Positions 841 to 64,000 of a DNA stretch of 64,000 nucleotides are shown in pieces. The DNA is from Lepidodermella squamata (taxonomy: Eukaryota > Animalia > Gastrotricha). The stretch spans positions 186,001 through 250,000 of the forward strand of contig JBLDXI010000015.1 of NCBI GenBank assembly GCA_047495785.1, given 5' to 3'. The position numbers and the translations under genes are program-made. The number at the start of each line of letters is the position of its first letter. The stretch's first letter is position 1. Below the pieces are notes generated by a model. That model was not told the origin of the DNA and did no database searches. It was given only the letters and a program-made list of their open reading frames with translations.

Positions 841-2560
841 TCACCTTTCGTACCAAATTTTCATAAAATTCAGCAAATACGCCTCGGCCATCAACAATTT
901 TAAAGTCGGCCGTTCCGCATCGCTGAATTCGCTGCTTCTGGCCGTAAACGCATCGCCATCGACTGCCAGCTCCGGAAACTCAGTCGGCCAACACGCCAGG
1001 GTCAACTCCGCGTTTTTAATCCGAGTGAAAAGTTCTTCCAATTTCAACCCATTCGAACTTGTGATTTCAGCTAATAACCTCAAAATAGTCTTCATTTCAC
1101 CGGCGAATTGCGACAAAGCCCCGGCTGATGCGAAAACGTTGAGTTCTTTAAACATGAAAGTAACCCGATCTTGCGGGGCGGTAATCACTTTTGAACTCGA
1201 TAAAATCGCACGCGATAACGTGTAGCGATTCGACGAAGTCGGAATAGGCTGTAACGGGCTTTGATTTTCCGCATCTTGCTGCTCGGCTTCACTCGATTTC
1301 GACCACAAATCAATATAACAACGCCATAATTGGAAGAAAATCGTCATATTCCCGTTTGTCGAACACTGCTCCATGGCTAAAAACCAAATTTTAGCCGAAT
1401 TCGACTTGTCAACTGATGCGTAAATATCTCGCAAAATTTTCGGGACAAATGGGAATCGAGCTCTTCGATTCATTTCGTCCGCATTGCCGGAAATTGTTGA
1501 CGACGTTATCCAATTAACAGATAATAAGAAAGCCTGTTGCAAAAACGGAGCTTGCCTCGTTGTACCAAATAACTTATGAAGAGACCAGAGCAAGGATAAA
1601 CTATGCGAATCTAGCCCAACTATGGTGGGCGGTCCTTTCGATTGAAGTTTCGAAACAAAAAGCGATACAACCTTTGAGAAGGCCGATTTTTTCGGCAGTA
1701 ATTCTTCGAGATAGGCTGAAATACTCCCAGTGGCTTGTTGGCCGTTTGAAACAATTTGATCAACAAAATGGCCGGCGAAAGTTAACGAAGCAGCAGTTGC
1801 TGATAGTTCGTATAGCAGCGATTTCTGCTTTTGGCTTCCATCTTCACTAGCTGCCAAGTTTTTCGTCAATAAATTGTCGTAAGCAATTATATTCAGTATG
1901 CAATCGATCGCGTTAGATAGCGAGTTTTCAACTAGGGTTTGATCGGATTTTGACGTTGATGTTCTTTCGACGAGGCGAAGAGCTCGGTATAACGAGCATT
2001 TCGCAACAGTTGCGAGTGAAATCGAGTCGTAACCGTTGGAATTTGTTGCGCCGAAATCAGCTGTGACTAATTTGATGAAGCTACCAAGAGATCGAAGGAA
2101 TGATTCAAGGCCAGAGAAACCTTGACTGGCAGATGAGAATAATTCATGAATTGCGATGTTTTTGATTGATTTAGCGAGATCAGCGAGCTTTTTGAAAGAC
2201 TTTGAACTTCTGTCTCGGTCTTCGTCGAAAGCTGTGACGATGTAAGAACCGAGGAGGACTGGTATGATAACGCCGTTCAGTGACGGTGATCCCGGCTTTG
2301 GTGTTTTCAGCAACTCAGGGCCTAGTTCGGTAACTGCAGCTTCTGCGAAGGTTACAACGCTATTAACCAGCGATGCGATATCGCAAGATGAAGCATTGAC
2401 TAGAACATGACTGGGCCGAAGATTTTGCTTGTCGTATTGAAAGGTGAATTCGGTGGTGCAGTTGTAGAAAAATGCTTGAGCTGCACGTGGACTAGGGTTT
2501 TTCCTGCAAATTCGACTTCGCAAATCGTCTAGTCCAGCAACTGGCATTAGTAATAACAAC
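841..2560 (-). CDS. Large uninterrupted terminal exon (~573 codons) of an unidentified Leu/Ser-rich, probably alpha-helical protein; upstream part disrupted
   Basis: The 579-aa ORF is preceded by an acceptor (ttctatag at 2561-2568). No motif recognised. Upstream coding-like sequence (2907-2635) carries in-frame TGA stops. Confidence 0.6.
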
Positions 2561-2634
2561 CTATAGAATATTAGCTTCAAAATTAAGAAGCATTATAAGA
2601 GAGCGACTCGGATACACAGCACAGTTCACAATCT

Positions 2635-4542: not shown

Positions 4543-7500
4543 ATGGAAAAATACATCGGCATCCCAGATTCTCACACTCGTCAGTGCAGCGCACTAGCTT
4601 TCAACACTCACAAACGTGAGATCGTCGCTGGCTATGAAGACGGCACAATCAAAGGCTTCGACATGGACAGCGGCAGCTCATCGCAGACCCAGTTGAACGC
4701 TCACAACGGCATGGTCAACTGTCTGCTCTATTGGCAAGAATCGAAACTCATGCTTTCAGCTGGCAATGACGGCGTTATTGCGGCATGGCTGCCTAGCGGC
4801 TCATGTTACGGCAAAATTAGGGTAATACATCGTTGAAAGAAATTGATTCAGCGTATTACTACTGTCAATTATTTTAGCTATACAAAGCAATATACAGTTT
4901 GGCTGTGAACCCTAGGAAGAAGCATCTTTTAGTTGGCCTATCTAACTCAATGAGGATTTACGAATTGGAAGAAGGTATGCCATGATCTGAATCTCATGCC
5001 AAATCTTCAAATGCGGAGAATTTACTCTTCACAGTCTCAGTTAAAACTGGCAGAAAAGCCATAAGCCAAGGTTTCAGAATACCGAGTGTTGATTCTTGTT
5101 TTTCTGTTTGCTTGAAGCTATTTCGCTTTCATGGAAAGGTTATTTTTGCTGTTTGTTAGCTTGTTTTGCGATTTTTAGAGTGTCATAGCTCTATTTTTAG
5201 CTTGATAGTTGTTCATTTTTTGCCACCACTAATTCTTAAATTACTCTATAGGTGAGGATAACAAGTTTGTGAAACAGCCAGCGATTTGGGAAGTTCGAGA
5301 TCACGAAGATATCGTAAAATGCATTTGCTGCTACGAAGGTCGCGTCTACACGGCCGGGTTCGATGGAAATATCTGCGTTTACGAATCAACAATCGTCACT
5401 ACCACGAAAGCCCCATCAAATCAAAGCAATGCAATGTCTACGAATCGATTCAGCATGAAATCCGGGCGTAAAAGTGCTCGAAATCGTACTCCGTCGCCGA
5501 AAAGCTCTAGTAATAATTCGTTCATCAGAGCCCCGCCTCTGGAAAGAATCGACAAGAAACGAGCTCATGATGCTGGTATCGTGTCTATGCAGGTGTTGCG
5601 CGATGCCGAGGCAAATGTTTGGGTGTTCACTGGATCTTTCGATAAATCGCTGAAGGTGTGGAATCGCGATTGCAAGCTAGTGCATCAAATCGTCGGCTTC
5701 GTCGGACCTGTCTCTGGCATATCTTACGTCAATAAAACGCGCAGTCTATGGGCTGTTTCCGGGTCGAGCCAAGTCAGCGTTTACGAGCCAAAATCTGGCG
5801 ACAATGTGAGCGATATTTGTGGGATTTTTTTCACAAAAATAAAAAATCAGGCCATTTTGAAAATAATTGATTTCACAGCATCGATTGAGAAAAAACTTCG
5901 GATTTTATTTTGCTATTTCATCATTAAATTTTCAAAAAATAGAATTTCGAATCCTTTTAAAATTCTCATTTTTTATTTGAAATTTTCAAAAATTTCCAGA
6001 TTTCGGAATACGTGAGTGCGGCGACCCGGGCGGGTGAAGACGGCGATGATACGGAATTTTCTGCCTTGCACCTGATGACGTCGAGCCCAGAGCACGGCTG
6101 CGTGTACGCCTCAACCTACGACAAGGGCATCGTCGGCTGGAAGTACAACCCCGACGGCTGTTTGACGTCGATCCGAAGCCGGCTGCCCCTAGAAGCGATT
6201 ACATTCACCCGGAAAACACCCATCCTGATCTTTACTGGGGACCAGCGTGGTTCGATCACGAAATGGGAACGCATGGAAATTAACCAGTATTTGTACACGA
6301 AGGAGGAGCTGCGAGTCGCCGAGCGGGAGCGGAAGGACAAAACGAGGCAGAGGCCCGGCGCCGAAATAGCAGCGTCAGTTGCGCAGACAGAAGCAGCCCT
6401 AGCCGCGAAGCCAGCGTCGGAGGGTTCAACGTCGAATTCAAGGGCGAACTCGAAGCGCGGATCGCGGGCGAATACGTCGCATAGCAACCATCGGGCGAAG
6501 ACGGCTGCCTCGAGGCGGTCGGCTGCAAATGCGGACAACAAGTCGGATGCTGAGTATAGTGGCGATGAAAAAGCTGAGCCGGTTGCGCCGCAGCAGCAGA
6601 AACCGGCGAAGGACCGCCAGGCGTCGGCGCACTTGCCGAAAAATGCTATCACGGATTTGGTCTACATTGAAGATCTCGATTTTATCGTCGCAGCATCGGA
6701 GGATAAATTCATCTGTAAGACCTTGAAAATTTGAAATTGGACCATTTTTCTGATTAATTGCACAAATAAAATCTTGAATCGCAGCTCTTGCGCAAAATCT
6801 TATGAAGTTTTTCCTTTGAATTGGACCAAGCATCCGAAACCGGGAAAATATAAAAATTTTAAAATTTTGAAATTTTAGTTTCCTCGAAAATTTGCAATTT
6901 TGAGATTTTTTCCATTTCAGATGTCTGGGGCTTTGATCCCGATGCGTGTCGAGCTTTGGCCGATTTGCAGCGCCAGGCTGCGAAGCGTGACCAGAGCGAG
7001 ATGGAACAGAGGTCATTCAAGCGATTCCTCGATTTCATCCAAGTTTCAGACAAAGAAACCAAGGTAATGAAAAATAGATTTCTCGAAGATCCGAGCTTTA
7101 TTTTTGATTAATTAATTAATAGTCGGTGGATGTTCCGGAGACAGTGGCGAATGCCGAGTCGATGGGCGTGACGAACCGTGTCGCCGGCTTCACGTGCCTC
7201 GCCATTCTCGCTGAACACGTCGATTGCGTCACCTCACTGGCCATCATCCCGAGTTCAGACGGCTTCGGTAGTACCTACATGGTAAATTTCAATGTTTAAA
7301 ATATTTTTAAATTAAAATTTTTAAAAATGAAATTTTTTCAAAATTCTTCGAGTACATTAATGTAAAAAGTATCGATTTTGATGATAATTTTTCGTGAAAA
7401 TTATTTTTCAAATTTTGTGAAGGCTTGTTGAGAGCTCGTAAGTTTGAGAAGCATGCTACTGGGCAAAATTGATCGCATGAGAAAAATCAACTAATTTTAT

Positions 7501-11707: not shown

Positions 11708-14505
11708 TACGCGGCGATTCGCAGTTCTATTCAGCCCTCTGCCGCGACTTCATCATGGCATTCACTGACAAGCGATCTGAAACACGACCGACAATCGATC
11801 ACATATTCCGATTCGGCGAGCCAAGCAACGAGGAAGCCATTAAGGTAATATAATTTAATTCAATTGTACCATATAACCAAGCTATTATAATTGAATTGAG
11901 GCTGTAACATGTCACTTTGACTTTATCCGCAGTAATTAAAATAGTATTATGTTGACAATTATTGATATCCTGCTCCAAGTCAAGCCTCTACCTCTGAGCT
12001 TATTTCCCGAGTCCTATGTTTATAACAAAAAAATATATTTCCGATTGGCAGATTTTGGAATGGAATTCCGCCTTGGGCATAGCCACCATCGTGGCATCAC
12101 ACCGGTCGTGCGCAATTGTCACGTTGAAAGCCCGATTCCGGTCATGGGTTATAGACTCATAGACATAACAGAAGAGTTAGAACCGGCCATGGTAGATTCG
12201 CATCAATGCGCTCTCATACCATAGTTCTCACTGGTGTCAATTCCGCCATGGCTTGCCAAACCATGTCATACGTGAGTGCGCATTGACGCGATTCTACCAT
12301 GGCCGGTTCTAACTCTTCTGTTATGTCAATGAGTCTATAACCCATGACCGGAAAAAACATTTCGCAGATGGAATCGAACCATCGTGCTTCTAGATAGCAT
12401 AGACAACACTGTAACAGATAGGACACCAACGATCTTTCCATAGTGAATTATTCGAGCTGAATTTGCAAAGAGTGCGGCACGCGACCACTTTTTATGCCAC
12501 CCAACGCCCTATCCGCCCATTATATTTTTAATTAATTTCAAAAATTAAAAACTCCACGTGGACCTTTTTCGAAAATTTTGATTTTCTGCTCATAAATACT
12601 AGAAGCGGCCTTCTATCTAATGATACCAGGTACACCTGGTGGTCCCTTATGGATAATTTTCTAAAATTCGCCAAAATGGGTTATATTTGGTGATTTTGGG
12701 CAAAATTGCCACTCTTCTGCCACGGTTGGCTCTTTCGGAAAAATTTTGAAAATTTTGAAAAAATTAGTTTATCCATATTGAGAAATTTCTCTATCCGATG
12801 ATATACAATTTGTCGGGTAAATAATTTATTTCGATTTTCCGATTTTTTCTTAGCTGGAAAAAGCATTATTTGCCAACATATTTCTGAATAAAAGAACGCT
12901 GTGAGGGAATTCAAAGTCCAATATGCACGGCCTGAAAAAATCGGAAAATCGAAATAAATGATTTACCCGACAAATTTTATATCATCGGATAGAGAAATTT
13001 CTCAATATGGATAAACTAATTTTTTCAAAATTTTCAAAATTTTTCCGAAAGAGCCAACCGTGGCAGAAGAGTGGCAATTTTGCCCAAATTGTTGTAAACC
13101 ATTTTTTTGTTGGTTGTTGTCGGGTTGGTAAACCACCAACCCGACCCCACGACCACACCCTGCAAAAAATAGTTGAACTTTGACACAGCAAATCGAGCCT
13201 AAAATGATATAAAATATTTTTGCGTTTTGTTTGCAGGAATTGGTGAGATGCGCTCTTGAAAATGATGCAACGGGAATGTCCAAACTGCTGATGCGCCGCA
13301 ACCAATTGGGCCTGGATACTAATGGAAAATATTGGGAAGGGGAATACAGTTGGGAAAGCAATGCAACCGCACTTCATGCTGCAGCATCCAAAGGCCATGT
13401 TGGAATTGTTGAACTGCTGGCGGGAGAATTCCAAGCCGATGTGGAGGCCGATAAGGATGGCAAGACGGCAATGCACTACGCCGCCTCGAATGGCTATGCT
13501 GACGTCGTGAAACTGCTGGCGGGCACGTTCAACGCCAGAGTTAACGCAGCAGATAGGAGCGGCTCCACGCCATTGCACATGGCCTCCGAGAGTGGCTATG
13601 TTGACGTGGTGGAACTGCTGGCGGGCACGCTCAATGCGGACGTCAACGCGGAAAATAAGTATGGCTACACGCCATTGCACTTGGCCGCCTGCAATGGAAA
13701 AGCTGACGTGGTGGAACTGCTGGCGGGCACGTTCAATGCCGATGTCAACACGGCGAATGTGGAAGGCATAACGCCGTTAAACAGTGCCGCCGCGAATGGC
13801 AAAGCTGACGTCGTGGAATTGCTGGCGGGCAAGTTCAATGCTGATGTTCACGCGGCGGATGAGGAAGGCATGACGCCGTTACACAGTGCCGCTATGCTTG
13901 GCGAAGCTGAAGTCGTGGAACTGCTGGCGGGCACGTTCAATGCCGATGTCAACACGGCGAATGTGGAAGGTGACACGCCATTGCACTCGGTCGCCTATTG
14001 GGGCAATGCTGCCATCGTGCAACTGCTGGCGGGCAAGTTTAAAGCCAATGTTAACGCGGCTGATGAGAATGGCAGCACGCCATTGCACGATGCCGCCTCG
14101 AAAGGCAAACATGACGTCGTGAAACTGCTGGCGGAAAAGTTCAAAGCCAATGTTAACGCGGCAACTAAGAGTGGCAAGACGCCATTGCACTTGGCCGCCT
14201 TAAATGGCAAAGCTGACATCGTGGAACTGCTAGCGAGCGAAGCCGACGTCAACGCGGCAGATAATGAATGTTATTCGCCACTGATGAGAGCTGCCTATTG
14301 TACACAACCTGAAGTTGTTGATCTTCTTGTCAATAAATTCAAAGCCAATGTGAACCTGAAGAACAAGAATGGACAAACTGCACTGGATTTGGCTGAAAAC
14401 CCTAGTTGTGAATCTGATAAGAATTCTGATAAACAACGGCAAATTGTCCGAATCCTTTCAGGAGTTCTTGCTATTCATGAAAACCGCAAACGAAAACTTT
14501 GCTGA
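11708..14505 (+). CDS. Ankyrin-repeat protein, paralogue 1 (~11 ANK repeats), preceded only by a remnant of the kinase C-terminal exon
   Basis: Exon 11708-11844 (FYSALCRDFIMAFTDKRSETRPTIDHIF...NEEAIK, donor gtaata) splices in phase 0 to exon 13237-14505 (acceptor ttgcag, ELVRCALEND...). It has 34-aa TPLHxAA repeats and an in-frame ATG at 11755. Confidence 0.8.
12136..12353. mobile_element. Small fold-back MITE with ~85-bp inverted arms
   Basis: ttccggtcatgggttatagactcatagacataacagaagagttagaaccggccatggtag... is mirrored at 12268-12353. Confidence 0.8.
12695..13088. repeat. Near-perfect ~155-bp inverted repeat (fold-back element) in the intron of ANK paralogue 1
   Basis: 12695-12848 is the reverse complement of 12935-13088. 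Confidence 0.88.
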
Positions 14506-23522: not shown

Positions 23523-26500
23523 ATGTTCAAATCAGCACGCGAGTTCAATACGTGGAAGGTGCTGGGCCGTGGCGGCTTTGCCACGGTCTACTTGTGCCGA
23601 AGGGGTACGACTTATGAGAATTATGTTGTTAAGGAAGTAAACCTCACTCAGTTGGAACGGAATTGCAGCGATGAGAACCAAGCTAGGAAACTTGTTAAAA
23701 TCAGCAGCGACGAGGCAAGTTATAAAGAGATTGATGAAAAAGAGATGAAAACCCGAGATATCACTTGTTTTGCAGCACTCCAAGTTGGAGAAACTGCGTC
23801 ACCCCAACATTGTGCTAATATTCGGTGCATTCAAGGGTAGGCAAGCTTTTTATGCTGACTAGACCTCATTATATGGGTGTATAATCTAGAGCCATACAGC
23901 GGCGATGATGAAGTAAAGCGGGGATGCGAGATGTACTACTTGGTCATGGAGCACTGCGAGGGCGGAGATCTGGACAGTCGAATCGGAACAGGACGCGAAA
24001 AGATCAGCGAGGTGCAGCTGCAATCCTGGGCCAGACAGCTAGCATCGGCGTTGAAGTTCTTGCACGACAACGGCATCGTTCACCGGGATATCAAGCCGAA
24101 AAACATTTTTCTAAGCCATGACAGGCGAGCGGTCAAACTCGGCGATTTTGGCATTGCCAAAGACTTGGACGAGTAAGTTGGCTCTTTTCAGCTACTGCTA
24201 TCGCCGGTGGCTTCATTATTTCGCGGGTTAAACCTTGTTACTATTTTGCGCAGGGCTGCAACGACAAAGTACACGCTGAGTGTAGCTTCTTGGGACTACG
24301 CAGCTCCGGACTACATCGAGAATAACGATTACCAGCGCCCTTGTGACGTGTGGTCGTTTGGCGTGACTCTATTTGAACTGGCAAACTTTGTGAAACCGGT
24401 AAAAAGTTTCCACCTGCATTTCCACTTTGCATGATGATCCTATAATTATTAGTTCTACGGAAAAACGGCGATGGCTGTTTGTCTAAGCATTCAATCGTAA
24501 GTGCATTCAAGTTTTCCATTTAATGCCTGTGGAAAATTAACTCGTCGAGTTAGCGTGCATTGACAATTGACAGCCAAACTAGTCAGCCCACTGAATACAA
24601 TGGCGACCAGGTTTAGCACTAGCCTCAATTGTCAAAGAATATAACTTCGATTCCCTATGGCTCTGCTTCTTTATTCTTCGTTGATGTGCTACACAGCAAT
24701 TAACACTTGTTCGAATTACTAATTAGAATCAGATAGGCGAGGGTCGGGATCTAAGGCAGCCAAAGGTCAAGAATTGGAGCGAACGCGATACAAATATTGA
24801 GGTAATGCGAAGCAATGACACGTCGGCTCGAAAAGACTTTACCTAGGAAATGATTAGGAATAGCTTTTTCGACTGCGGAGTCACTTCGGCATAGAAGGTT
24901 GTAGGTGGCTCAGCCTGGCAAGCCTTTTAGAAGCTGCTCCTGTAAACGTATTGGCATGATTTAAATGATGACGTGATGTTTCGCAGTTAATAATTGCCTC
25001 TCTCGAGTAAAAGCCCCTTCAAATAATTGCCCGAGTTCTTCCTCTGTTTTTCGAGTTCAAAACAAAATACGGTATTTTAAATAAACATATAGGTAAATCA
25101 ATCACGACAAAATAGGGAGTTTCGAAAAGTGATTTCAGGCCACTAGAAAATTCCAAAATTTGGTTCCAATGTTACCAATAAATTTATGGTGAGCGAAACC
25201 TAATTTGCATTGTTTTGCGGAACCGATGGCTATGCAAGGAGTCATTTTTTATTAATTCCAAGAATTTTAGACGAAGCATGAGTTTTGAATTGAGCATTGA
25301 ACAGAGTGTTATGCTGAATTTACTGGTGATTTACTGGTGAAGTTATTTCGGGCCACTAATAGAACAGTGGTTCTCAAACTATTTTCGTTCCCGATTGAAA
25401 ATGAGGGCCGGCTGGCGACCCCTCCGGCCGCATTGCCTCTTGAACCCTCAACCGGCCGCCAGTAATGATAAAACAGGACCTTCCCGGCCGCACGCCTCCA
25501 TAATCAAGATTTGAAGGTTTCGAGTGCGCTTTTAAGCGGAAGATTGGTTATTAAATCAGGGGTTTGGAAGTTAGTTTGCTCGGAAGTGAAAAGGTCCCTA
25601 ACATTCGCCTACACCGGAAAAATTAAGTTGAAGAAGGTTTTAGAGGCTCAGTATTCATTTAGTATTCCGTTTTTCTATTGTTTGTCGTAACGGTTTTTGC
25701 AGCACAAAAAATCGCGTACTCTGCTAGTATAAAGCCTGGGCGTATAGGGCGATTTCGACCGGTTTGAGTACATTTCAATGGCGTCAAAAATTTGGAAAAT
25801 TGATGCACAAATCAATGAGATTTTGCCCGACTTTCAAGAATTCGGCCGACGGTCTGCTCAAGTCAGCGAAATTTTTAATTGAGGAAAATCGAAATTTCAC
25901 ACCCCAGTTTTCCGAGAGAGAAACCCAAAACGTCGCGCAAATTAATGCGAAATGTCGCGCAACACAATTTCAAGTGTCGCGCAAGTGCGCATGTTACGTG
26001 TCGCGGTTTGTTTAATTTCTTTCGAAATTGTCGTATATTCGAATATTCTAATCGAAGCTTTTTCCGAAATAAGAAAATGTCGTTATTATTTTTAGCCATA
26101 ATGACCTCTGTACCTTAATAAAATACAGCGCGCAAATCAGGGCTTTTGATCGAGGCTGGTACGTTTCATCTACCGTACTGCCCAAAAAATTGGCCAGCCT
26201 CAAATAAATGTCAGAGATTATAGGTCATCCGAAAAATAAATTTCGGGCCCGGAATGAATGTCAGGTCAGTGGCGGTGACAATGCGAAAGATCACTAATGA
26301 TTCTGATCATTCTGATTGAACATAATTTCTACTATTGGCACTTATAGCACTTTGATTGCCTATGAAATTCGATAAAACAAGCCTTAATCCTGTTGGACTT
26401 CCACGGCAACACTCTTATGATCACAAAGATACCTGGGCTAACTCCAGCTAATTCAAGCGAAGAATTTCCGCCCTCTATTCGCCGCAGATCTCAATTTTTT

Positions 26501-29500
26501 TAGTGCCCGCATCCGCTTAGATTTTGACCGGATTTCACGTAAAATGCGAGGAAAACAAATTCAATGATGGGGAATCTCTTCGAATAAAAAATTGTCCATC
26601 TTGTCTTTTCGTCGAAAATTTTCGAATACTTTGTACTTGAGAAGTGTGGGTTCAAAATGGCATCTAATAGCAGGACTGAATCGGATCACTGATATCGCAT
26701 GGTTATTAGAAGAAGAAATATGACACGAGTCAACTCGCAAAAAAATATCCGATTCGGGCTTGCTTTCTATTAGAATTTTAAGAAAATCAATGTTAGATCG
26801 AATTGATACATTTGCAACTTATGTGGGATTCGTGGGATTCCAATTTATGAAGGCCTAGAATTTTACCTGGATTTTTTCTGAGAAATTAGAAAACACGATC
26901 TTGATTTTTTTGTTCGCCAAAGAGGACGAATTCAATGCAAGTCTGCTACTACTTGGTATAGCTAAAAGGCTAGCGGCATAAATTATGAATTATGAATTCA
27001 TTACAAGACATTCTTGCGGCATTATTGCTTTCAATAGCTATCAGTGTCACAAGTTAATTATTGAAAAGTTCGCTGACCCGGATGAACACCACGTGTAGGT
27101 GGCTGTATAGGTGGCCTAAGGTTACGTAAAAGGCTTGGGTTAAATCAGCTCTTGATTGGAGATCTATTTTGACTAGCCATCAAGTCTTTTGGAAAATATT
27201 TGTTTTAATCAAATTTACTTTTTTCAACATGAAATTATTTTTTCAATCATCATTCAGAAATTATTATTTGATAGGGAAAATATACTTTCATGATGAAGTT
27301 GTGGATTTTAAGTGTTATGTTTGACCTCGGGTGATAATATTAAATAACAAAGGTGATCATATTAGCAAGTGATTTTTGGCGCGCGATTTTTTTGCGCGTG
27401 CAGAAGACACGTGCTGCGCGGGAAAAATCGCCTTAAATGCCTGAATTGTTTAGGCGAACAAGTGCTACCGACGCGGTACTCTTCGTTGGGATGACACAGC
27501 TGGCCCAGCGTGCGAATTGAAAATCTCCATCGACATTGGAAATTTAGCGGCTATTTAGTGCAGCGCAGCGGCGTAAAACGCGACGGCGGCTTGATCTTGA
27601 AGGGCCCTGACTAATGTCACTTATTTGAATCATTGTCTTCGCAAAAATGAGAATCGTAAAGTTATTCGGACAAATATTTAAAAATTCAATTATTTTTGGC
27701 CAAAAACAAATATTTGTCCGTAACTTTGCAAAATTACAGCTAACTCAATTTTCCATAATTTAATGAACGGGTTCGACAGCAATGAGCTACATTCTTCCTC
27801 CAAATTTTCTGTTATTTTCCCGGACTGGTCATCCTCAAGGGCTTTAATGAGTGTCGATCGCAAAAATTAGCATCGAATATTATCGAATATTGGTTAGTAA
27901 TTAGTTTAGATTCACCTTTTTCCAGAGCCATTTGCCACGGCTTCATTCGCGTTTGCCAATCTATTTTTAGCACGAGCCTGTTGACGCGAATGATGGTCGC
28001 TATTTTTTTGCGTCTTCTTCATCGTCGTATTCCACTTCTTCTTTGGCAATGACATTCATGAATGGATTTTATTGCTTTTGTAGTAAAAAATCTGTAGCAA
28101 AACACTCGACGCGCCACATTTTTAGGCAAATTTATTAGACAAGCATCGAAAAGTAACGCATCGTACAAGTGCAAATTAATATCTTCATTCTTCGTCTTTT
28201 CTGCCTTGAAGTTCCACTTACTAGGAATAAGAAAACGTAAAAAAACCCCTGGGAAAAGATGTAGGTAGCATTAGAAAAATATATCATTTCGAATGAAGGT
28301 TCTTTCAATTTGAAGCCATTTCAAAGCTCATTTTCCTTACGTTATACCGCTTTTGCCTCCCAGAAAACCGGCGCGGCCATTCGACGATTCTCGCGGCTAC
28401 TCGGCCGAATGCCGCGACTTCATCATGTCGCTGCTGGAGAAGCAGAGCAGCAGCCGACCGACCATTGATCAAGTGCTGAATCACGCCTTTCTACGCCGCG
28501 ATATCGTTGACGAAAGCCAACAACAACCAAAACAGTCAGTCGCCCCTGCATCGGTGAAGCCGAACAAAGAGACAGAGGAATCGTCGAGGTCTAAACCGCA
28601 AGAGAAAGTCGAGCAGAAGCCTGCGAGCCCTGTAGAGTTTTCCGAGGCTGTTAAATTTTTCATTTTTAAATTATTTCTAAATAATTCAGGCTGTTGTAAG
28701 TAATCTGCCGAAAAACAAAGACGAAGCTATCAAGGTTGCTCTTTTTCAAACTCAAAATCATTGATATTTCATTTTTCGGTGTGATGATTGAAACAGGAAT
28801 TCGTGCGATGTGCAGTTGAGAATGATGCAGTGAGAATGTCCCAATTGCTGCTACACAAGGACCGATTGGGACTGGATACCAACGGAAAATATTGGGACTA
28901 TGAAGGAACTGCACTTCATGCTGCAGCATTCAAAGGCCATGTTGAAATTGTTGAACTGCTGGCGGGCAAGTTCAAAGCCGACGTCAACGCGGCAGCTAAG
29001 GATGGCTGGACGCCATTGCACTGGGCCGCCCGTAATGGCAAAGCTGACGTCGTGGAACTGCTGGCGGGCAAGTTCAAAGCCGACGTCAACGCGGCAGCTA
29101 AGGATGGCTGGACGCCATTGCACAGGGCCGCCTTAAATCGCAAAGCTGACGTCGTGGAACTGTTGGCGGGAAAGTTCAAAGCCGACGTCAACGCGGCAGC
29201 TAAGGATGGCTCGACGCCATTGCACAGGGCCGCCTTATGGGGCAAAGCTGACGTCGTGGAACTGCTGGCGGGCAAGTTCAAAGCCGACGTCAACGCGGCA
29301 GCTAAGGATGGCGAGACGCCATTGCACATGGCCGCCTGGCATGGCAAAGCCAAAGTCGTGGAACTGTTGGCAGGCACGTTCAAAGCCGACGTCAATGCGG
29401 CAGATGAGGGTGGCCAGACACCACTGATGAGAGCAGCCTTTGGGATAGAACCTGCTGTCGTCGATCTTCTTGTGAATAAATTCAAAGCCAACGCAAACCT

Positions 29501-29621
29501 GAAGAACAAGGCGGGACAAACTGCACTGGATAAGGCTAAAAACCCTTGGAATTCATCTGAGGAGTATAAACAACGACAACGACAAGTAATCGAAATCCTG
29601 ACGAAGGCGATAACCAAGTGA
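23523..29621 (+). CDS. NEK-like Ser/Thr kinase fused to C-terminal ankyrin repeats (paralogue 2, ~626 aa, 8 exons)
   Basis: Exons 23523-23714 (GC-AG intron follows), 23776-23836, 23890-24172, 24254-24398, 24453-24496, 28364-28649, 28690-28734, 28797-29621. Total 1881 nt, phases consistent. Kinase motifs GRGGFA, VVKE, LRHPNIV, LVMEHCEGGDL, HRDIKPKN, DFG, YAAPD, DVWSFG, RPT. Seven ANK repeats. Confidence 0.86.
28900..29460 (+). repeat. Tandem 102-bp coding repeats (34-aa ankyrin units) with near-identical framework
   Basis: The framework gaactgctggcgggcaagttcaaagccgacgtcaacgcggcagctaaggatggc recurs every 102 nt. Confidence 0.95.
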
Positions 29622-40027: not shown

Positions 40028-42175
40028 TTAATATTTGCAAAACAGCCGCTTTTCGACCGTGTCGATGCGCATCAGTCCTCCGTAAGGTATGACAATTTGC
40101 GGTTCCGTGTGGCCGAAGTCGACATTCGCAACAATTGGCATGGCCGGGTTGTAGCGTCGCACCATTCCGACGACGGCGGCGTACTGCTGCTGGCGATACG
40201 CGTCGCACTGCGCGTCGCTCAGTGGCCGGTCACGGTCGGCTGCCCGGGCGCGCCCGATCACGAGGCCGCGGCACCGCGACAGAATTCCGCGCTCGCCCAG
40301 CGCCCGAAAAACGCGCTCGACGTAGAAATGCGGGGGAGATTCCTGAAATAACAAAATAAATGATTCGATGCAAATAATAAAAAATCGTATCGCAACCAAT
40401 AAGAACAAGTCCCACTTTTAGCGGAACCGTAACTCGATTTCGAATAATTGATCAGCTAATAAAAATGAGTTTCGAAATTGTAAGAATTCGAGGTCAATGC
40501 GAGGGTTCCAGACCCAAATTTGAGCCCCACTCTTGATTTCGCAACTTGCAACTTTGCGGATTCAATTTTTCAGAACTTTGAAAAATTCTGATTTTTCGTG
40601 CTTCAAGTCTTGACTGGACTCCACAATTTTTAATGACCCCTATCTGGTAAATCTCCACACTGCGTTTACTTACGATATCTTAGGGCCATCTAGAGAAAAA
40701 ATCCACTTTTTCTCTATGATTGGGGCATATCTTGCAGCGTGGCACGAAAATTGAATTCGATCGTCCCACGAAAATTCGAAATAGGAATCAAGCATGTCAC
40801 TTGTTAATAGGAGTAAATAAGCCCGGAGAAATTTGGTCAAACCGGGTAAAATGTCGAAAATTACCGACCCAGTTACTATGTATCGGAGTTTTCCGGGTTT
40901 TCTCCGGTGAATTTTCTATTTCTTAGGTTAAATCCCGGATAGAAGATGGAATTTTCTCTCGGTCGATTTTCTCTCTTCGGTTAATTAGAAAAATTTAGTT
41001 CTATTTCTTGCAAAAAATTGCCAAGGTAAAAATAGTTGCGCAACTTCTGGGACACGTTGTATGTGTTGCCTGAATATCAAATCCCAGGTTTAGGGATAAA
41101 CCAGTATAAAGATGAACAAGGATAGGTAAGTCGAAGTCGCGAAGAATCGATAAAATTTAAAGCCATAGCTCCTAATTTTAGGTATTGCTGGAACCTAATT
41201 GTGCTGAAAATTCCTTTGACCCATTTAAATTTCAAAATTTCAAATTCAAGGCTTCAAATCGAAATATGAAGAGTCAATTATTTCCAAACTCGTTCTTACA
41301 AAAATAAATTGAAGAAATTTTCAAAAAATTCTTCAATTTATATAATAAATGCTCTCTCACATATTATGTCAAAGCTGGGTTCGATTTCTAAGAAAGTTTC
41401 CGCTTGATTGGTCATATATTTCATTTACCTCACTTGTTTCCGTGAAAAGAATAATTTCGTTAAACCGATCCAAGGCCGGAATTTCAACACCATGCCGAAG
41501 AAGTTCATCGATCGACTCAACACATCCGCCCCAGGTAACACCCTCGACAACGGTTCCGTTCGACTGACCCGCGTCACCATCAAACCACAACCATCCCATG
41601 TCGTTGCGTCTCCTCGTACATTTCTTCGTCAAATTGCTCGGATCCGCCCATTCGAGGCCAACTTCGACAAGGTAATCACCGGCGCGTAACTGAACCCAGT
41701 CGGGCGTGTCGTTGAACAGAGCGTGTCGAAGGTATTCAACCGTTAAATCATCCATTTCAACATTCATAGCCAGTTGAGGCATCACGTGGCTACCGTAGTA
41801 ACTCGGCACCCCCAGCAGCCATAGAAAATTCTCGAAATGCGTGTTGTCGCTGTAGCCGAAAAATGGCTTTGGATTTTGCAGGAATGGCTCCTTTGGCAAG
41901 TTTTTGATAAATGTGATTTGGTGGTCGCCGCCGATTGATGCGAAAATAGCTTTGATTTGCGGGTCGACAACTGCTGCGATCAAATCGGCTGATTTCTGCT
42001 GCGGGCTGGCGTCAGTCATGCGTGTCGTTGGGTACTCGACCGGGACGAGGTTGAAGCTATCGCGCAGTCGGGACAGCCCGACTTTGTAGACATGTGGAAA
42101 GTGGCCGGGCGCTCCGAATGACAGGGTGATTACGGCGACTTTATCGCCAGGTTTCAGCTTGGCCAATTTTTGCAT
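40028..42175 (-). CDS. Peptidase S66 (LD-carboxypeptidase/MccF family), 353 aa, 2 exons, bacterial-type
   Basis: Exons 42175-41429 and 40342-40028 (phase 0, gtaaat...tttcag). Motifs LKPGDKVAV, SIGGD, GYSDNT (Ser), GGC, ETSEE (Glu), NVDFGHTEPQ (His). Confidence 0.92.
40826..41060 (+). repeat. Dispersed repeat copy in the S66 intron
   Basis: gagaaatttggtcaaaccggg...ttttccgggttttctccggtgaattttctatttcttaggttaaatc closely matches 57439-57542. Confidence 0.75.
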
Positions 42176-42926: not shown

Positions 42927-45900
42927 TTAGAAAACCATGATTCGCGAGACTTGAATCGTAGCTGTGCCTTCCTTTTCGACGCTGACGTAGCGTCCACTCA
43001 GCGGAGGCGTACAGTGAAAGGTCAAGGCTTGACCCTGCACCAAAGCCATGCGATTCCCATCTCTCCAGAAATCACAAACCAGGTTCGAACGAATCTGGGC
43101 ACCAGACGCCATGCCGACTCTAATCGTGAGTTGGCAACTGCCTGGGTTCGAATCAACGACCCATGACCCACTTTTCTGCGTGACTACAACAACTTTCCCG
43201 ATTGAACTCGTCACGCCGAGGTCAACCTGAAACCAGCCGGTGACCAACGCAGCTCCGACGTTGTTTTGGCCAGGCGTGGTCAAGGCTCTCAGATCGGACG
43301 AGTTGATCGCCGAGTTGCTGCTCGTCACCACCTTGAAACGCGCCAAATCAGTGCCGTTGTCGTAGAAAGCCGACAGCTGGCACAGTTCCAGCGTGGATCC
43401 AGCATTCACACCAACAAGACTCAGGTACCTACCAGAGATTGCGCCGCTTTGACAGGCGAATTGAACCTTCATGCCCGACTGAATCCTCGGCGTCCATAGG
43501 CACTCGGTTTGATTGCTCGTGTCAGCGGATGTAGTCGGCAGATTATCGCCCAATCGGACAGCGACTCTACCTAACGGCGGCGATATTATCGAGGCGTAGA
43601 CATTGTCAGATCGCGGCGCTGAGCAGCCTTTGAAACCAAACCTGCCGTACGGAGCCACGTTGAAGTCATCAACAATCAAACGAACCGCCATGGTCTGGAA
43701 AGGATATTGCGCGAGATAGGATATAAATGGGCTGGGGTTGCTTGCAGCTGATGGGCCGTCGAAAATGCGAAGTCTCGAGCCATTGTTAGGCCAAACGTAG
43801 CCGGACCAAGTTGAACCATCCAAACTACCCATAAGGTGGTACTTGGTGATCCAAGCTGTTGAGTCAACGCTGCACTGAACACTGACAGCGGTTAGGATTT
43901 TCAGAGATGTGAACGTGACTTGGTAGTAGGGCTGAGGGTCTGTGAGAAGGGGTCGAAAATCGGCCGTGCTCGATATAGTAAAGGTCTGAGGCTCGGTAGC
44001 CGGGTTCTGGCTCGATGAAACCGCCACATTGCTGCCATCATTCAACTCTGCCTCGCAAAAGAAATCTGGGGAGAGCTAGTATGAAATTTCATCTATGGGA
44101 TTATGAGAGGTACCTGGACAACCACGAAGAAGGACCCGCAAACCGACGCCGCCGACCGAAGCCAAAGGATGGATGCGGATGTAACGGGCGAGGATGTAAG
44201 GCCGGATGTAGTTCCAAGCAGGAGTGCCGCTGTCCACATTGCCTTGAAATACCTTCAAAGCATCGAACGCATGTTAGCCTACAGACCGTGCTCCGAGTAC
44301 GGGGGGGGGGGTGTAGGGGGGTAAGGGGTCAAAAAAACCCTGGCCTTTGAAAATTTCTGAAAAACGCGAGGCCCCCCTTTCCCCCTTCCTTCTGTTGATT
44401 AGCAGATTTTGAGCTCAAAATGGCTCGTTTTACCCCCTCAGAGCTGGAGCTAGTCGGATGACTGCCTACAGAAGACAGAAGAGTAAAAACATACTTTAAT
44501 GACACTAGGCCTAGCAAGCTCCATAACCCAGACGAAGTAGTTGTTCGGCGTGCCGTAGCTCATGCGGAAGGTGGTGACGTAGAATCCGGTCGAGTAGTCT
44601 CCCTGGGTCGCAATAGAAGCCACAGTCACTTCCTCGCCGATGTCGAGCAAAAGCGTTGGACTGGCGTCCGAAGCAGCTGGTCGCCAGCAACAAGAAACAG
44701 AGCCATTGGTATTAGCATCGCCCGTCCATTGACTTTGTAGCCGGAACTGATCGAATTTCACGCCGGCAGTTGATGTAAAAACTGAGCTAGGCGATGCTGT
44801 AGCAATGGCCGTCAAGTCTAGCTCGCAAACGTGACCTTGAACTGAAGCGAGATCAAACTTAGATTTGATCTTGATTCAAATTCAACTTACGCGAGAAGGG
44901 AGCCGGTGCTTGAGTGGCGACCTCCATCGCGAGGTACTGATTCAAATAGCCCGGATAAGCGACAAGGCTGCTAAACTCGCCCCGAGCGAATGCCGAAGGG
45001 AGAAGGACATTTCGCATGATTGCAATTCGCTGCAGCGGCATAGGCCTCGCGTCGCCGATGCTGTACGACATCATTCGAACGCCATCTAGAAAGCTCTCCG
45101 TCACCAAGTTGGTACTCGTTCCGTAGCCCATCGTCAACATGTGGTGCTGCCAGGTGTTCAGAAAAGGCGCCGTAGCACTGACGCTGCGAACATTGATCGA
45201 CACTGTGGTTGAAGTTCCGTTGTAGACCTCAATGCGGTACTCGATGGAGTTCGGCGTCGTCAGTTGAATGCCAACCTTGTGGTAGTCTGTACCCTGCTCG
45301 GCCTGGCCAATCAGCGGCATGACGACATTCGTCCCAGTCTCTTTGCTGTAGAAGAACATGCCGAATGTGTACGGCGTGCGATTGGACACGCCGCTGCCGA
45401 ACAGGATGCTCTTGTTGCTTGATACTGTGTAGTAGTAGTTGTTGATTGATGTCGTCTCCAGTGATCCTGTTCCGTCGCCAATATTAGCTATCCACGGGAA
45501 ACTGGTGCCAGCTAAAGAAAAGAGCATGATTGGATTATCAAAATAATGGAAGGCAGCATAGCCGTAGGATTATGTTTAATAAAAATTAGCGAATAATCAG
45601 TTATAGCATTGTTTGGAACAATTATGAAATATACTGAGATAAACTGAGATAAAATCCATCAGGGCTGCAAAACATGCAGAGCTTCCTGCGCAGAAACTCA
45701 AAATATCCCAATTTCCTATGAAATACTTATCCAATATCAAAATTTTGCTGTAAAAATTGATGAAAGATCGATAGTCGCTAATAACCGATAATCAAAGTGG
45801 ATCGGGAGTAGCGCCGTTGAATTCAACGCATAGAATTACCCCTAGATGTAAATTTTGAGCTCGATATACTTAGCCAATCAAAAGTTGTGGTGCTGTAGTT

Positions 45901-48900: not shown

Positions 48901-51900
48901 CATGAAATTGGTTACAGAGAAGTTCAAGGAAGTGCAAAAATCAAAATTTGTAAAATCCATATATACGAATTAACCCTTACCCTATAACCTTAGCCCTGAA
49001 CCCTAACCAAACCCTAAACCTAACCCTAACCCGAGCCCAGACACCTAACCCCAATTTGCAATCATCATTTGGTTAAAAAACACGATTTTATGCAAAGAAA
49101 TATGTACGAAAGGTAATTTGTCATAAATAAATATAAAATCTAGCTCAACTTTAACAAGAACAATTTTGAACGGCGGACACGCATTAGACTACGGGGTATA
49201 GCCGCCAAACACGAACAGATTCAAGTAACTGTTTCTCAACGTTTCATTGACATTCAATTGGCGTTATCGGCGAATATTTCGACTGTTAACTTGTTGACAT
49301 GAATGTTATTAAAATCTTACTCATCCAAGGGCATCCGTAGGCTTGCTCGATCTCTGACTGGTCCAAAGCACGCTTGTAAAACTGAACGCAAGCAATGCGA
49401 CCGCTCCACGAGCCGCGAATCTGGAAAAAGTACTGCTGGCGGAAAGCTTGGGCCGTAACGCAGCTGCTGTGCATGATGGTCCGATCGGACTTGTCGATGA
49501 CGATTCGAGTGGCGCCGCTGCGGCAGTCACTGATTAGCGCGAAAAAGAACCATTGGTCAACTGGGGCGGTCGACGTCGTGTTTGGCCACGGCCACGAGTT
49601 AGTCGCGTCGATGATGTAATCCGCCCGAATTAGGCGTGTGGTATTCATGATCGTCACGCCAAATTTAAACTGCCTGTAAGCGAGAAGGCACTTATCAAAA
49701 GCCTCGAAGCAAGGCCACAGGAAAGACTATACTTCTTAGTGTTTATTCCCCTGACTTACGCGTTGTTAGCTCGATTTCGTATCAAGGCAACATCAGCCGT
49801 CGTACTGTTCGGGTAGTAAACCCATGCCGCGTAAGTCCATCCGTTGTTTCTATCGAGCAGGTTGATATTTGTTGTTCGGACGAAAACAGCTCGATCCGAT
49901 CCTGGCCACTGCAAAGCACCGAGAGAACGGTTATCAATCCCAGCAGCGTAGGTCAAACTCGGCGGAATGATCGCGTGATTGCCATTGCTTGACAAATCAT
50001 CGCCTCCGCGCAGGTAGTCGAACAGCCACAGGCCATCAGGGTTCAGGGTGACTGCACCCGGTAGATAGGGTGTTACAATTTCCACCGATGTTATTGTTTT
50101 ACTAGAGCCGAAATCGATGGTTACGATTGGGGATGCTGAAGCTGCTGGATTGCCAATGATTCTTGCGCAGTTTTGCTGATGTTGTAGTCGAACAACTCGG
50201 GGCTGAGTAATCGAACTCGGACTCGCTAGAGATGAATCAAAGCTGGATGCTGTGACACCTAAATTCGATGCCATGTTGCGTATGTACACGGGAATTGCTG
50301 GGAAGCTCTTACAATTAGGTGATTTTTAACTAATGACTTTCAACTCACATTTACATCCCAAAAGTTCAACGCGGTAGCAAATTGCTGTCGAAAACGATAT
50401 AGGGATCACGTTGAAAAATTGAGCTACAACAGGGTTCGGGAACAAGATTGTCAAGGCCGCTTTTCCATTCGTATTTCCATCGAAGCCTCTGTTTTCAGCC
50501 AAATCGATCCAATTGTCACTAGCTAGGGCTTTGTATTGAAATGCGAACCCGGTTACCCATGCATTCAGCCGTTCGCAGCCTTGAATTTGAACAGCTCGAA
50601 TGATTGTTTGCTTCAACAGGTCGATCGTCAAACTGTTCTGATTACTCATTCCAGCCATGCCCCAGTTGAGCCGAGCGAAAAAGTTGCGAGCCATCGGATA
50701 TTGCGCAGCCAGTTGGCTGTCAGTTATGTCGCCGTTCTCGACGCCCAACGGCTCAAAGCAGTTGGCCATAGGGCAGCCGAGAAACGTTAACATGCCACAG
50801 CGGTAGTACAATGCAGTTCCGTTTTCGATGCTTATGGTCAGTCGGATGTAGCGCATCAGGATAGGCCGGTAAAATTGGAAAGTTGACACGCCAAATGGGG
50901 TTCCATGGAAAAACTAAACGTCAAAAAGAAAGCCGAATGATTTTTTCAAAATCTCAAATCAATTTTTAATTATTCAGAATAAATAAATATTGATACAATT
51001 CAAGAGGAGGTTTTGCACTTTTTGTAATTATTCTTATTACAAAATTAGCCATGTTTTACCACGGTATCAATAGCAGCGGAAATTCTGGCTAAAATACCGC
51101 TGGGAGAAATTTTGGATTATTTTGCCGTGCGAAAAGTTGGGTTTTTTTAGCCGGAAGATTTTCAAAGAAGCTTTGAAATAAGAAACAAGCTCAGTGAACT
51201 TCCGATTAATAATTCCCTTTAGAAAATGTCACGGTCTACCTTTTGTATACCACGACCAGACATCGTAGGCGTGTATGTAACATCATCTAGGCTATATTCA
51301 ACTCGAAACTGTTGGACGCAGTTTGCACCAGGGCACAGGTACTTGAATTGTGATAACCACGCGATTCGCTGCATGTCAATCTTTATCCAACTGCCGACTG
51401 GTGGGCTGTCCGCAAAGCAGCCCCGCAACCCGTGGGTAGAAGTCATCCGGCTGAAGTAAAACGGGTCCTTTGTCAACGTATAACCTGCGAAGGTCCAGGT
51501 CGCAATTGAGCTGTACGAGTAGCCAAGATCGCTTAAATAACTCGTGTCGTAGTCTAGATTTTCGATGGGGCAAGCTGGCGACGGGTCGCTCGCGAATTCT
51601 TTCAAGCATGTCGGTCGCGTCACTTCACGCCTGATCGCGTCGTAATACCAACTCGTCACGCATGAATTGCCATCGCTACACTGGCCCGATCTCGCGAACT
51701 GGCTCTTGCCATTTAGGGCGAATGCAGTATAGCCAGCCGTTTGGACTAACCTAGCGATGTTGGAGCCTTCCGGCGAAATGTTGTACAGAACGCATGTTTT
51801 CGAGCTCGTCTGAAATTGAGCGGCCTGGCAAGTCGAAGTAGCGCCACATGCGACAGCGCACACGGATTCTTCCGTAATTGAAGCGATCGAACTTGTAACA

Positions 51901-52034
51901 AGGTACGAGTTCAAGTTGGCCAGGCCACTAGATATAGTTGGAGCGATGGCGGAATTAGCATATCTCTGAAAGTAGGATCCTCCAATAACGAGACCCCAAC
52001 CCGTCCATAGAAGGATAAATCTAGCGAAAAGCAT
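42927..52034 (-). CDS. Secreted mosaic protein ~1741 aa: signal peptide, PAN/Apple, F5/8-type-C (discoidin) domains, LamG/pentraxin-like domains, C-terminal F-type-lectin-like domains
   Basis: Exons 52034-51240, 50913-50349, 50297-49760, 49673-49321, 48608-48488, 47085-46478, 45511-44891, 44841-44495, 44252-44114, 44065-42927 (5226 nt, phases consistent). Motifs CAVACGATSTCQAAQF...CVLY, PLGVENGDITDSQL, IATQGD, ARYIRIHP, WFQVDLG, FHCTPPLSGRYVSV. Confidence 0.85.
45660..46447. mobile_element. hAT-like MITE (CAGGG termini, degenerate 8-bp TSD)
   Basis: TIR CAGGGCTGCAAAACATGCAGA at both ends. Flanks AAATCCAT and AAATCAGT (6/8 match). Confidence 0.8.
47528..48265. mobile_element. MULE-type MITE, 9-bp TSD GCATGCTAT, related to the 31068 element, with an internal ~115-bp inverted duplication
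   Basis: TIR GCACA...GCCCGCCTAAGTTTCCTCCACGCGC. TSD at 47519-47527 and 48266-48274. 47880-47995 mirrors 48082-48197. Confidence 0.88.
48970..49052. repeat. Degenerate interstitial (CCCTAA)n telomere-like tract
   Basis: taacccttaccctataaccttagccctgaaccctaaccaaaccctaaacctaaccctaaccc. Confidence 0.7.
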
Positions 52035-63679: not shown

Positions 63680-64000
63680 TCAAGATATAACACAAGAATT
63701 ACCCCCGAGGATTTTGATTATTTGTCGTTGTTCATCAGAATTCTTCTTAGATGAAGCCCAAGGGTTTTTAGCCCTATCCAGTGCAGTTTGTCCCATATTG
63801 TTCTTCAGGATTGCGTCAGCTTTGAATTTATTCACAAGAAGATCGACGACAGCAGGTTCTATCCCAAAGGCAGCCAACATCAGTGGTGTATCGCCATCCT
63901 CATCTGCCGCGTTGACGTCGGCATTGAACGTGCCCGCCAGCAGTTCCACGACGTCAGCTTTGCCACTCAAGGCGGCCACGTGCAATGGCGTCCTGCCATC
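63680..64000 (-). CDS. Ankyrin-repeat protein, paralogue 3 (C-terminal part only; gene continues past the right edge); ends in CaaX-like CVIS
   Basis: DGRTPLHVAALSGKADVVELLAGTFNADVNAADEDGDTPLMLAAFGIEPAVVDLLVNKFKA...GQTALDRAKNPW...CVIS*, with the same C-cap as paralogues 1 and 2. Confidence 0.9.
   Translation of the reverse strand, partial: DGRTPLHVAALSGKADVVELLAGTFNADVNAADEDGDTPLMLAAFGIEPAVVDLLVNKFKADAILKNNMGQTALDRAKNPWASSKKNSDEQRQIIKILGGNSCVIS

Follow-up and report, generated by a model that had tools for sequence, protein, structure and literature searches.

Do scattered protein kinase exons and an ankyrin repeat reading frame some kilobases downstream belong to one gene and, if they do, what could the product of such a gene be used for? 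The question arises at positions 23523 to 29621 (+) of a 64,000-nucleotide (nt) stretch of the genome of the gastrotrich Lepidodermella squamata (assembly GCA_047495785.1, 121 Mb in 151 contigs), which covers positions 186001-250000 of contig JBLDXI010000015.1, here called C15. The whole stretch is referred to as the window, and positions given without a contig are positions in it. A first reading made from the letters alone (the sequence-only reading) had proposed that the locus encodes a NEK-like kinase fused to an ankyrin array resembling designed ankyrin repeat proteins (DARPins), one member of a diversifying receptor-kinase family. We find that the kinase-ankyrin fusion is real, and our results support a family that is expanded and diversifying, with its variability concentrated on the canonical binding face of the ankyrin repeats. 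The explanation we favour, with rather better than even confidence, is a repertoire of binder-kinases: a lineage-specific, clustered family that combines a NEK-like kinase with a hypervariable ankyrin solenoid and was diversified by changing partners.

Kinase and ankyrin exons form one gene

Eight exons join in one open frame, which contains no stop and encodes 620 residues (Table 1). Two groups of exons (23523-24496 and 28364-29621) are joined across an intron of 3,867 nt. All introns have AG acceptors and GT donors except intron 1, which has a strong GC donor (GAG/GCAAGT). The start, MFKSAREF, is kept in the paralogues. A shorter exon 1 with a donor at 23636 was rejected, since it removes helix C, and the GC donor at 23714 was preferred. 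In the product, the kinase domain begins near residue 10. Behind it come a linker of some 60 residues, in which Lys, Ser, Glu and Pro are frequent, and an ankyrin domain of 274 residues. The Pfam scan of the exons detected only kinase and ankyrin families and no NACHT/NB-ARC, death or ROC domain; the linker is of low complexity. The Pkinase (PF00069) pieces span both lobes and match profile positions 3-40 (exon 1), 72-148 (exon 3), 152-193 (exon 4) and 232-263 (exon 6), and exon 8 is matched by Ank (E=4.3e-49) as well as by Ank_2. No hydrophobic segment fit for a signal peptide or a membrane span was found in the 620-residue product (maximum 19-residue hydropathy 1.2). We read the locus as one intact gene with a soluble product, which is probably transcribed.

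Four independent lines of evidence speak for the fusion, namely the completeness of the kinase, a public open reading frame (ORF), the paralogues and sequencing reads. The spliced kinase aligns with the Nek1-like protein P0392 (a kinase of 308 residues) over 273 columns (33% identity, 146 bits), and this alignment is gap-free over the exon 4/5 and exon 5/6 boundaries. Subdomains X and XI, otherwise missing, are thus exactly what is contributed by the 44-nt exon and by the exon on the far side of the 3.87-kb intron. P0018, a contiguous public ORF from a Logan assembly of a different sample, shows 49% identity to the spliced exons 1-3, which supports the GC-AG intron and the 61-nt exon. Among the paralogues, a 44-nt exon with the borders AG...GTAAGT (once GCAAGT) lies 52-64 nt past exon 4 in 13 of the 19 other intervals between exon 4 and exon 6, and these exons encode a related peptide, F.G....V..NI[QL]. 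In several paralogues no more than 163-240 nt separate exon 4 from exon 6; the corresponding intron of the focal gene is long because it is filled with dispersed repeats.

The reads come from run X1, which was kept as contigs. These contigs are transcript-like, and the library type (RNA) is only a guess. Their depth lies on the exons, with almost none over the long intron apart from repeat-like stretches. The contigs contain the joints 24172>24254 and 28734>28797 (both GT..AG), and a loose end matches the tail of exon 7. A further joint, 23834>23925, leads from exon 2 to exon 3 of a paralogue, with the exon-3 start of L018 (loci of the family carry L numbers). Of the two junctions that the sequence-only reading had named for checking, 28734>28797 is therefore present in the contigs, whereas 24496>28364 is absent among the listed joints and is predicted here from the completeness of the kinase and from comparison with the paralogues.

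This absence is what one would expect if the kinase and the ankyrin array were two separate genes that had been joined by mistake, and kinase-less arrays do occur in the family (13237-14505; L011). Yet a kinase without exons 5 and 6 would miss subdomains X-XI, exon 6 lies only 166 nt 5' of the ankyrin exon and is linked to it via exon 7, whose junction X1 shows, and the same exon order is found at 20 loci with introns down to about 55 nt. A mis-join is therefore highly improbable.

The sequence-only reading had predicted one in-frame protein of 626 residues that uses the 44-nt and 45-nt exons. Both exons are used in frame and the frame across the long intron holds, but the protein has 620 residues, because exon 6 ends at 28631. 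The donor at this position, CC[GT]/GTA[GA]AG, is conserved in nine close paralogues, and reading past it runs into TAG in four of the close paralogues (L001, L016, L018 and L020). An exact-match X1 contig follows exon 6 up to 28631 and continues with 48 further letters, which correspond to exon 7 (45) plus 3. The exon 6 donor at 28646, chosen earlier, and a GT alternative at 28649 were rejected in view of this conserved donor and the X1 contig.

Two side observations concern exon 7 and intron 5. The focal exon 7 is six bases longer than the 39-nt exon of nine close paralogues, and the extra bases are GTAAGT, a perfect donor-like hexamer inside the exon. In intron 5, positions 25366-25499 hold a dispersed element of about 135 nt with more than 300 first-look candidates genome-wide (76-91% identity), which resembles a short interspersed element (SINE) or a miniature inverted-repeat transposable element (MITE). 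Another repeat, at about 25181-25348, is present in fewer copies. In the DNA run X2, depth over both repeats is in the thousands.

A NEK-like kinase under purifying selection

All catalytic residues are present in the focal kinase: the Lys of VVKEV, the helix-C Glu (DEHSKLEKL), the Asp and Asn of HRDIKPKN and the Asp of DFG. The departures are an Ala for the third glycine of the glycine-rich loop and APD for APE; the latter had been described before and is seen again in the spliced model. Most paralogues retain the Lys, HRD, Asn and DFG, and a few carry degenerate motifs (GFG, DFS, HRDVTPKN with GEFG, or degenerate glycine loops). Over 19 copies of exon 3, the median nonsynonymous divergence (pN) is 0.13 and the synonymous divergence (pS) is 0.61, which corresponds to a dN/dS of about 0.12. 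The kinase is thus constrained by purifying selection, and its paralogues did not arise recently.

For classification of the kinase, several searches were compared. The named relatives of P0018 are nearly all NEKs (Nek1-like, Nek2, Nek3, Nek5, Nek6 and "NIMA-related"), and the best named match of the whole spliced kinase domain is Nek1-like. Of the 175 PDB matches to the catalytic exon the 60 best were viewed. GCN2 ranked first (72 bits) and NEK1 second (67 bits), and no RIPK was found among these 60, so that the locus does not resemble a RIPK4/ANKK1-type TKL kinase. An exhaustive phmmer search with the 93-residue catalytic exon was dominated by multi-kinase proteins and gave one useful relative, P0018, which is 59% identical where it matches exon 3. 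From the ESM Atlas, a feature search returned only generic kinase clusters. The PDB matches of exons 1, 4 and 6 alone fell weakly and inconsistently into the AGC, TK/AGC and STE groups and were not used. Taken from these comparisons, a NEK-like rather than a RIPK/TKL kinase is supported by similarity, as the sequence-only reading had suggested from the motifs; the end-to-end alignment with the Nek1-like protein points the same way.

A DARPin-like ankyrin array

Exon 8 encodes, in this order, an N-terminal cap (N-cap), four near-identical units of 34 residues, a degenerate last repeat and a helical C-terminal cap (C-cap). The 34-residue unit, TPLH at unit positions 4-7 and the capping repeats identify the domain as ankyrin (PF12796/PF00023). 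Across internal repeats, each of the four TPLH positions is conserved at 92-96%, and TPLM occurs only in the last repeat. Units 1-3 of the focal array share 30-31 of 34 residues. The N-cap is family-specific and reads EFVRCA..ND...M.QLL...D.LGLD.NGKYW.

A single-sequence AlphaFold model of the domain has a mean predicted local distance difference test score (pLDDT) of 84.8, with the repeats above 90 and two helices per unit. The solved structures nearest to this model are designed ankyrin binders and DARPins, followed by ankyrin-B, and the sequence search agrees. With 6ne4_B, the model superposes at a root-mean-square deviation of 0.8 A over 189 columns (46% identity). The predicted fold thus supports a DARPin-like array. 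A word-indexed search with the 422-residue array of a paralogue in the window found generic ankyrins only, at no more than 46% identity, and no family member within the length range searched.

An expanded and clustered family

A genome-wide search with the 50-residue N-cap identified 26 loci. At 20 of them kinase exons lie on the same strand as the N-cap, 19 times within 1-5 kb upstream and once (L019 with L025) 11 kb upstream. The arrays contain 0-9 internal repeats between the same N- and C-caps. The family is clustered, with groups of loci on C15 (151-167 kb, 197-216 kb and 250-257 kb, plus others), C3 (288-323 kb), C12 and C19 (contig coordinates). About 14-15 loci look intact at this resolution, and about a quarter are truncated, rearranged or interrupted by stops. 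A stop or frameshift was found in L010, L012, L013, L021 and L022. The six loci outside these 20 are the array at 13237-14505 (see below) and five others: L011 is an array without a kinase, L006 retains exon 6 only, L008 exon 1 only, L007 is a fragment and L003 was rearranged by an inversion.

These results agree with the earlier proposal of an expanded family with shared caps and differing repeat content. The alternative under which that proposal would have failed was a small conserved set with invariant repeats; instead, there are 26 loci in which both the binding-face positions and the number of repeats vary. The claim of at least three paralogues in 64 kb needs a restriction: three loci are touched by the window, but only the focal gene is complete within it. 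The second locus, at 13237-14505, shows nine matches to the internal-repeat model between its caps, and apart from an exon 6 remnant no kinase exons were found within 7 kb upstream of it. It may be a kinase-less paralogue or a decaying copy. The third, L001, is a complete kinase-ankyrin gene of which the larger part lies beyond the window end.

The catalytic exon alone gave 526 first-look candidates. Among the best 150, which were scored, some 22 matches show at least 74% identity and the others 44-64%, many with the same exon limits. The N-cap family thus represents one branch of a far larger NEK-like kinase expansion.

Some pairs of loci may reflect the assembly. L010 (C42:1427752-1437652) and L012 (C85:5856-15756) encode 306-residue arrays that are 93.8% identical. 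One of the contigs is large and the other small, and the two loci may be haplotypes or recent duplicates. Their lesions differ: one gene has a frameshift and QRD in exon 3, and its counterpart has a stop in exon 1. The scores of four intronless HSP70 genes (C2:1536188, C12:1308608, C2:1628354 and C15:4437728) are nearly equal. Together with equal-scoring pairs of kinase hits on different contigs, this set hints at duplicated or uncollapsed genome segments. A search with an intronless HSP70 gave its best named hits in bilaterians (molluscs, arthropods and tardigrades), none above 78%.

Variability is concentrated on the binding face of the repeats

For the analysis of variability we used 99 gap-free internal units from 23 arrays. 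Shannon entropy is at most 1.1 bits at most framework positions and peaks at unit positions 8 (3.56), 11 (3.55), 3 (3.04), 34 (2.72), 12 (2.62) and 1 (2.47). These correspond to canonical ankyrin positions 10, 13, 5, 2, 14 and 3 (unit G2 being canonical G4). In the predicted model the six positions belong to helix 1 or to the turn that precedes it. In the ANK-N5C library, positions 2, 3, 5, 10 and 13, which have high entropy in natural ankyrin repeats, were randomised; they form a continuous binding surface over helix 1 and the beta-turn (PMC4308713). Among the 99 units there are 95 distinct six-residue signatures. Aromatic residues make up 20% of the six variable positions compared with 4% of the framework.

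The same contrast is found at the nucleotide level within single arrays. In L016, which has five units, 12 of 18 nucleotides vary in the hypervariable codons and 1 of 84 elsewhere (p=1.7e-10). The respective counts are 11/18 and 7/84 in L015, and 11/18 and 10/84 in the focal gene (p=2.9e-5). Within L015, L016 and L018, pN in the hypervariable codons is 0.36-0.46, beside a framework pS of 0.01-0.02. L016 on C3 and L020 on C32 have arrays of equal length and could be compared position by position: 21 of 30 hypervariable residues differ, compared with 10 of 140 framework residues (hypervariable pN 0.45, framework pN 0.036, framework pS 0.064; p=9e-13).

Framework synonymous divergence inside arrays is 0.01-0.12, far below the 0.19-0.69 between the kinases of the same genes, from which it follows that the repeats are being homogenised. 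The near-identical units, the variation in repeat number and the hypervariable positions on the binding face match the pattern that marks internally highly conserved repeats, for which an identity of about 85% or more is required. The focal gene itself, compared with L013, L016, L018 and L001, is a mosaic. Its exons 1, 2 and 4 most resemble the C3 genes (92-95% at the nucleotide level), exon 3 and intron 3 a gene at 160 kb of C15 (95%). For exon 6, intron 6 and the two caps, the closest copy is the neighbour downstream, L001 (86-91%). This distribution of similarity suggests gene conversion or recombination between paralogues.

Could such a pattern arise without adaptation, by relaxation of exposed positions, gene conversion that homogenises the rest, and birth-and-death decay? 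The damaged quarter of the loci and the mosaic structure of the focal gene would fit, and synonymous sites inside the hypervariable codons cannot be estimated reliably. Neutral relaxation should give a dN/dS near 1, whereas the pN of the hypervariable codons in L015, L016 and L018 far exceeds the pS of the framework beside them. Conversion tracts would not spare the same six codons in every repeat, and other exposed positions, e.g., those of the outer helix, are far less variable. We regard this explanation as improbable. Even less credence is given to a targeted mutational or templated mechanism, such as hypermutation or cassette copying, that would produce the variable codons in place of selection on ordinary mutations. 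The confinement of changes to a few codons of otherwise identical 102-nt units is what such a mechanism would produce; no base-specific bias or associated enzyme gene was noticed, neither having been searched for systematically, and unequal recombination with selection explains the same pattern in fungal NLR repeats (PMC4986451).

Possible function of the family

In the favoured explanation, a repertoire of binder-kinases, the focal gene encodes a NEK-like Ser/Thr kinase that looks active and is connected by a flexible linker (about 60 residues) to an ankyrin solenoid close to consensus. The arrays would change by gain and loss of repeats and by homogenisation, through unequal recombination or gene conversion, and the six surface positions per repeat, located on the beta-turn and the inner helix (the concave face), would be kept different and rich in aromatic residues. 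Each array may then represent a germline-encoded binding surface of distinct specificity. It might bring the kinase to the bound protein, or binding of a ligand might switch the kinase on. Changing partners would be the driving force of diversification.

Several points weigh against this explanation. The junction between exons 5 and 6 is absent among the listed X1 joints, the library type of X1 is only a guess, and the placement of the kinase with the NEKs is one of similarity only. Canonical NEKs have the activation segment GTPxYxSPE. The family has ASWDYAAPD/E instead and so lacks the NEK-type motif. The broken members and the degenerate kinase motifs indicate that a part of the family is decaying. 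Furthermore, the divergence values are NG86 counts on recombining repeats and not a formal test, and if paralogues with a common framework exchanged whole units, the contrast between nonsynonymous and synonymous change could be inflated without point-wise positive selection.

The strongest rival is a set of housekeeping targeting kinases as in Giardia, whose arrays would dock the kinases to self structures (cytoskeleton, cilia or organelles) and whose diversity would reflect subfunctionalisation. Domain order and variable repeat number match the Giardia Neks, in which removing the ankyrin repeats changed localisation (PMC3218828). Purifying selection on the kinase is in line with such a role, and the present data contain no link between the family and infection. 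Near-identical frameworks with 95 signatures in 99 repeats and a strong enrichment of aromatic residues would, however, be unexpected for kinases docked stably to self partners that are conserved, as would a hypervariable pN about seven times the framework pS between arrays of equal length. The Giardia proteins also differ in kind: their repeats are divergent and of the "TALM" type and their Neks mostly catalytically dead, whereas the repeats here are consensus-like with TPLH and most kinases look active. In our analysis, the contrast between framework and surface argues against stable self partners, and self-docking is considered unlikely, though a serious contender. If the arrays do dock to self, NEK-ankyrin proteins would have radiated a second time, independently, which bears on why this combination recurs.

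The binder-kinases might also act as intracellular receptors for non-self, with germline "natural DARPins" on NEK-like kinases that recognise pathogen or symbiont effectors or allorecognition cues. We consider this role doubtful. If true, it would define a class of receptor-kinases in innate immunity, with ankyrin repeats in place of leucine-rich repeats and a kinase in place of the NOD domain, diversified by repeat shuffling and by selection on six paratope positions.

Other features in the window

The exons of the focal gene and the related features are compiled in Table 1. Four other ORFs, at 41369-42172 (-), 42927-44042 (-), 51219-52031 (-) and 5269-6012 (+), carry the Pfam families Peptidase_S66 (LD-carboxypeptidase; E=1.4e-17), F5/8 type C domain, PAN domain and WD40. 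An open frame of 578 residues at 841-2577 (-) has no Pfam match.

Table 1. Exons of the focal kinase-ankyrin gene and related features in the window.
Feature	Position	Strand	Description
Exon 1	23523-23714	+	Start codon, glycine-rich loop GRGGFA, VAIK-type lysine (VVKEV), first part of helix C; Pfam Pkinase; GC donor
Exon 2 (61 nt)	23776-23836	+	Helix-C glutamate, HPNIV motif
Exon 3	23890-24172	+	Hinge motif CEGGDL, catalytic loop HRDIKPKN, DFG; Pfam Pkinase, E=4.8e-24
Exon 4	24254-24398	+	Activation segment, APD for APE, subdomain IX (DVWSFG); Pfam Pkinase, E=1.4e-8
Exon 5 (44-nt micro-exon)	24453-24496	+	Kinase subdomain X
Intron 5 (3,867 nt)	24497-28363	+	Inflated by dispersed repeats
Exon 6	28364-28631	+	Kinase subdomain XI, then Ser/Pro/Glu/Lys-rich linker; donor CCT/GTAGAG
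Exon 7 (45-nt micro-exon)	28690-28734	+	End of linker; 39 nt in nine close paralogues
Exon 8	28797-29621	+	Entire ankyrin domain and stop codon; Pfam Ank_2, E=1.7e-72
Exon 8, N-cap	28797-29000	+	
Exon 8, internal repeats	29001-29408	+	Four repeats of 102 nt
Exon 8, last repeat and C-cap	29409-29618	+	Degenerate last repeat (TPLM)
Paralogous ankyrin array	13237-14505	+	Open frame of 422 residues, same N- and C-caps, nine internal-repeat model hits, without kinase
Kinase exon 6 remnant of this paralogue	11716-11808	+	58% identity over 31 residues
L001, 3' end (C-cap)	63707-64000	-	Last 294 nt in the window

Comparison with known systems

Animal kinase-ankyrin proteins include RIPK4 and ANKK1 (TKL), DAPK1 (CAMK), ILK and TNNI3K, which are single conserved orthologues with divergent repeats. 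Like RIPK4, ANKK1 and DAPK1, the protein described here is a soluble polypeptide with the kinase first, whereas in ILK and TNNI3K the ankyrin repeats come first. It differs from all five by its expanded family, homogenised repeats and NEK-like kinase, and no death or ROC domain was found by Pfam. The list of such proteins in the sequence-only reading had omitted DAPK1 and the closest parallel, the Nek-ankyrin expansion of Giardia (PMC3218828); the contrast it drew to RIPK/TKL kinases holds.

In Giardia lamblia, 133 of 198 Neks have ankyrin repeats (1-26), 71% of the Neks lack catalytic residues, and the repeats belong to a divergent "TALM" subclass (Manning et al. 2011, PMC3218828). Both systems have an N-terminal NEK-type kinase followed by a variable array, in a large, clustered, fast-turnover family with pseudogenes. 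Giardia is a protist, while the present family is from an animal and combines homogenised TPLH repeats and a hypervariable surface with kinases that mostly keep their catalytic residues; neither the "TALM" subclass nor a majority of dead kinases was found in it, as the internal repeats are TPLH and most copies keep HRD and DFG. No animal NEK-ankyrin expansion was found in a literature search.

The same domain order occurs in bacterial Hanks-type kinase-ankyrin proteins. The metagenomic proteins P0184 and P0197 (663-690 residues) are collinear with residues 6-593 of the model at 29% identity, kinase first and ankyrin second. P0184 (L030 6001-7992) has no introns and lies in a prokaryotic neighbourhood (RtcB, archease, MacB/FtsX, Uma2 and PAP_fibrillin). 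Identity is low, and nothing points to a common origin over an independent fusion.

Closest in mode of evolution are fungal NLRs with internally conserved ANK, TPR or WD repeats, in which positive selection acts on the concave face (inner helix and beta-hairpin) and repeat number is polymorphic (Dyrka et al. 2014, PMC4986451). Near-identical repeats, variation in repeat number, concerted evolution and variable positions on the concave face are shared with the present family. The fungal proteins contain a NACHT or NB-ARC NTPase and assorted effectors, whereas the present proteins lack a NOD domain and carry a kinase N-terminal to the repeats.

With DARPins (PMC4308713) the arrays share a consensus framework, the N- and C-caps and natural variable positions that coincide with the randomised positions 2, 3, 5, 10 and 13. 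DARPins are man-made and built from 33-residue repeats, whereas the present arrays are natural, fused to a kinase and have a 34-residue unit with one extra loop residue. Nature appears to have reached the same design as the engineers of ankyrin binders, in which a few contact positions vary on a constant framework. Should the arrays bind varied ligands, they would offer a tractable model for the diversification of a germline recognition repertoire, and natural binder scaffolds on a signalling enzyme. Kinase-ankyrin fusions are known from protists and conserved repeats with a hypervariable surface from fungi; here an animal family with about two dozen genes combines the two.

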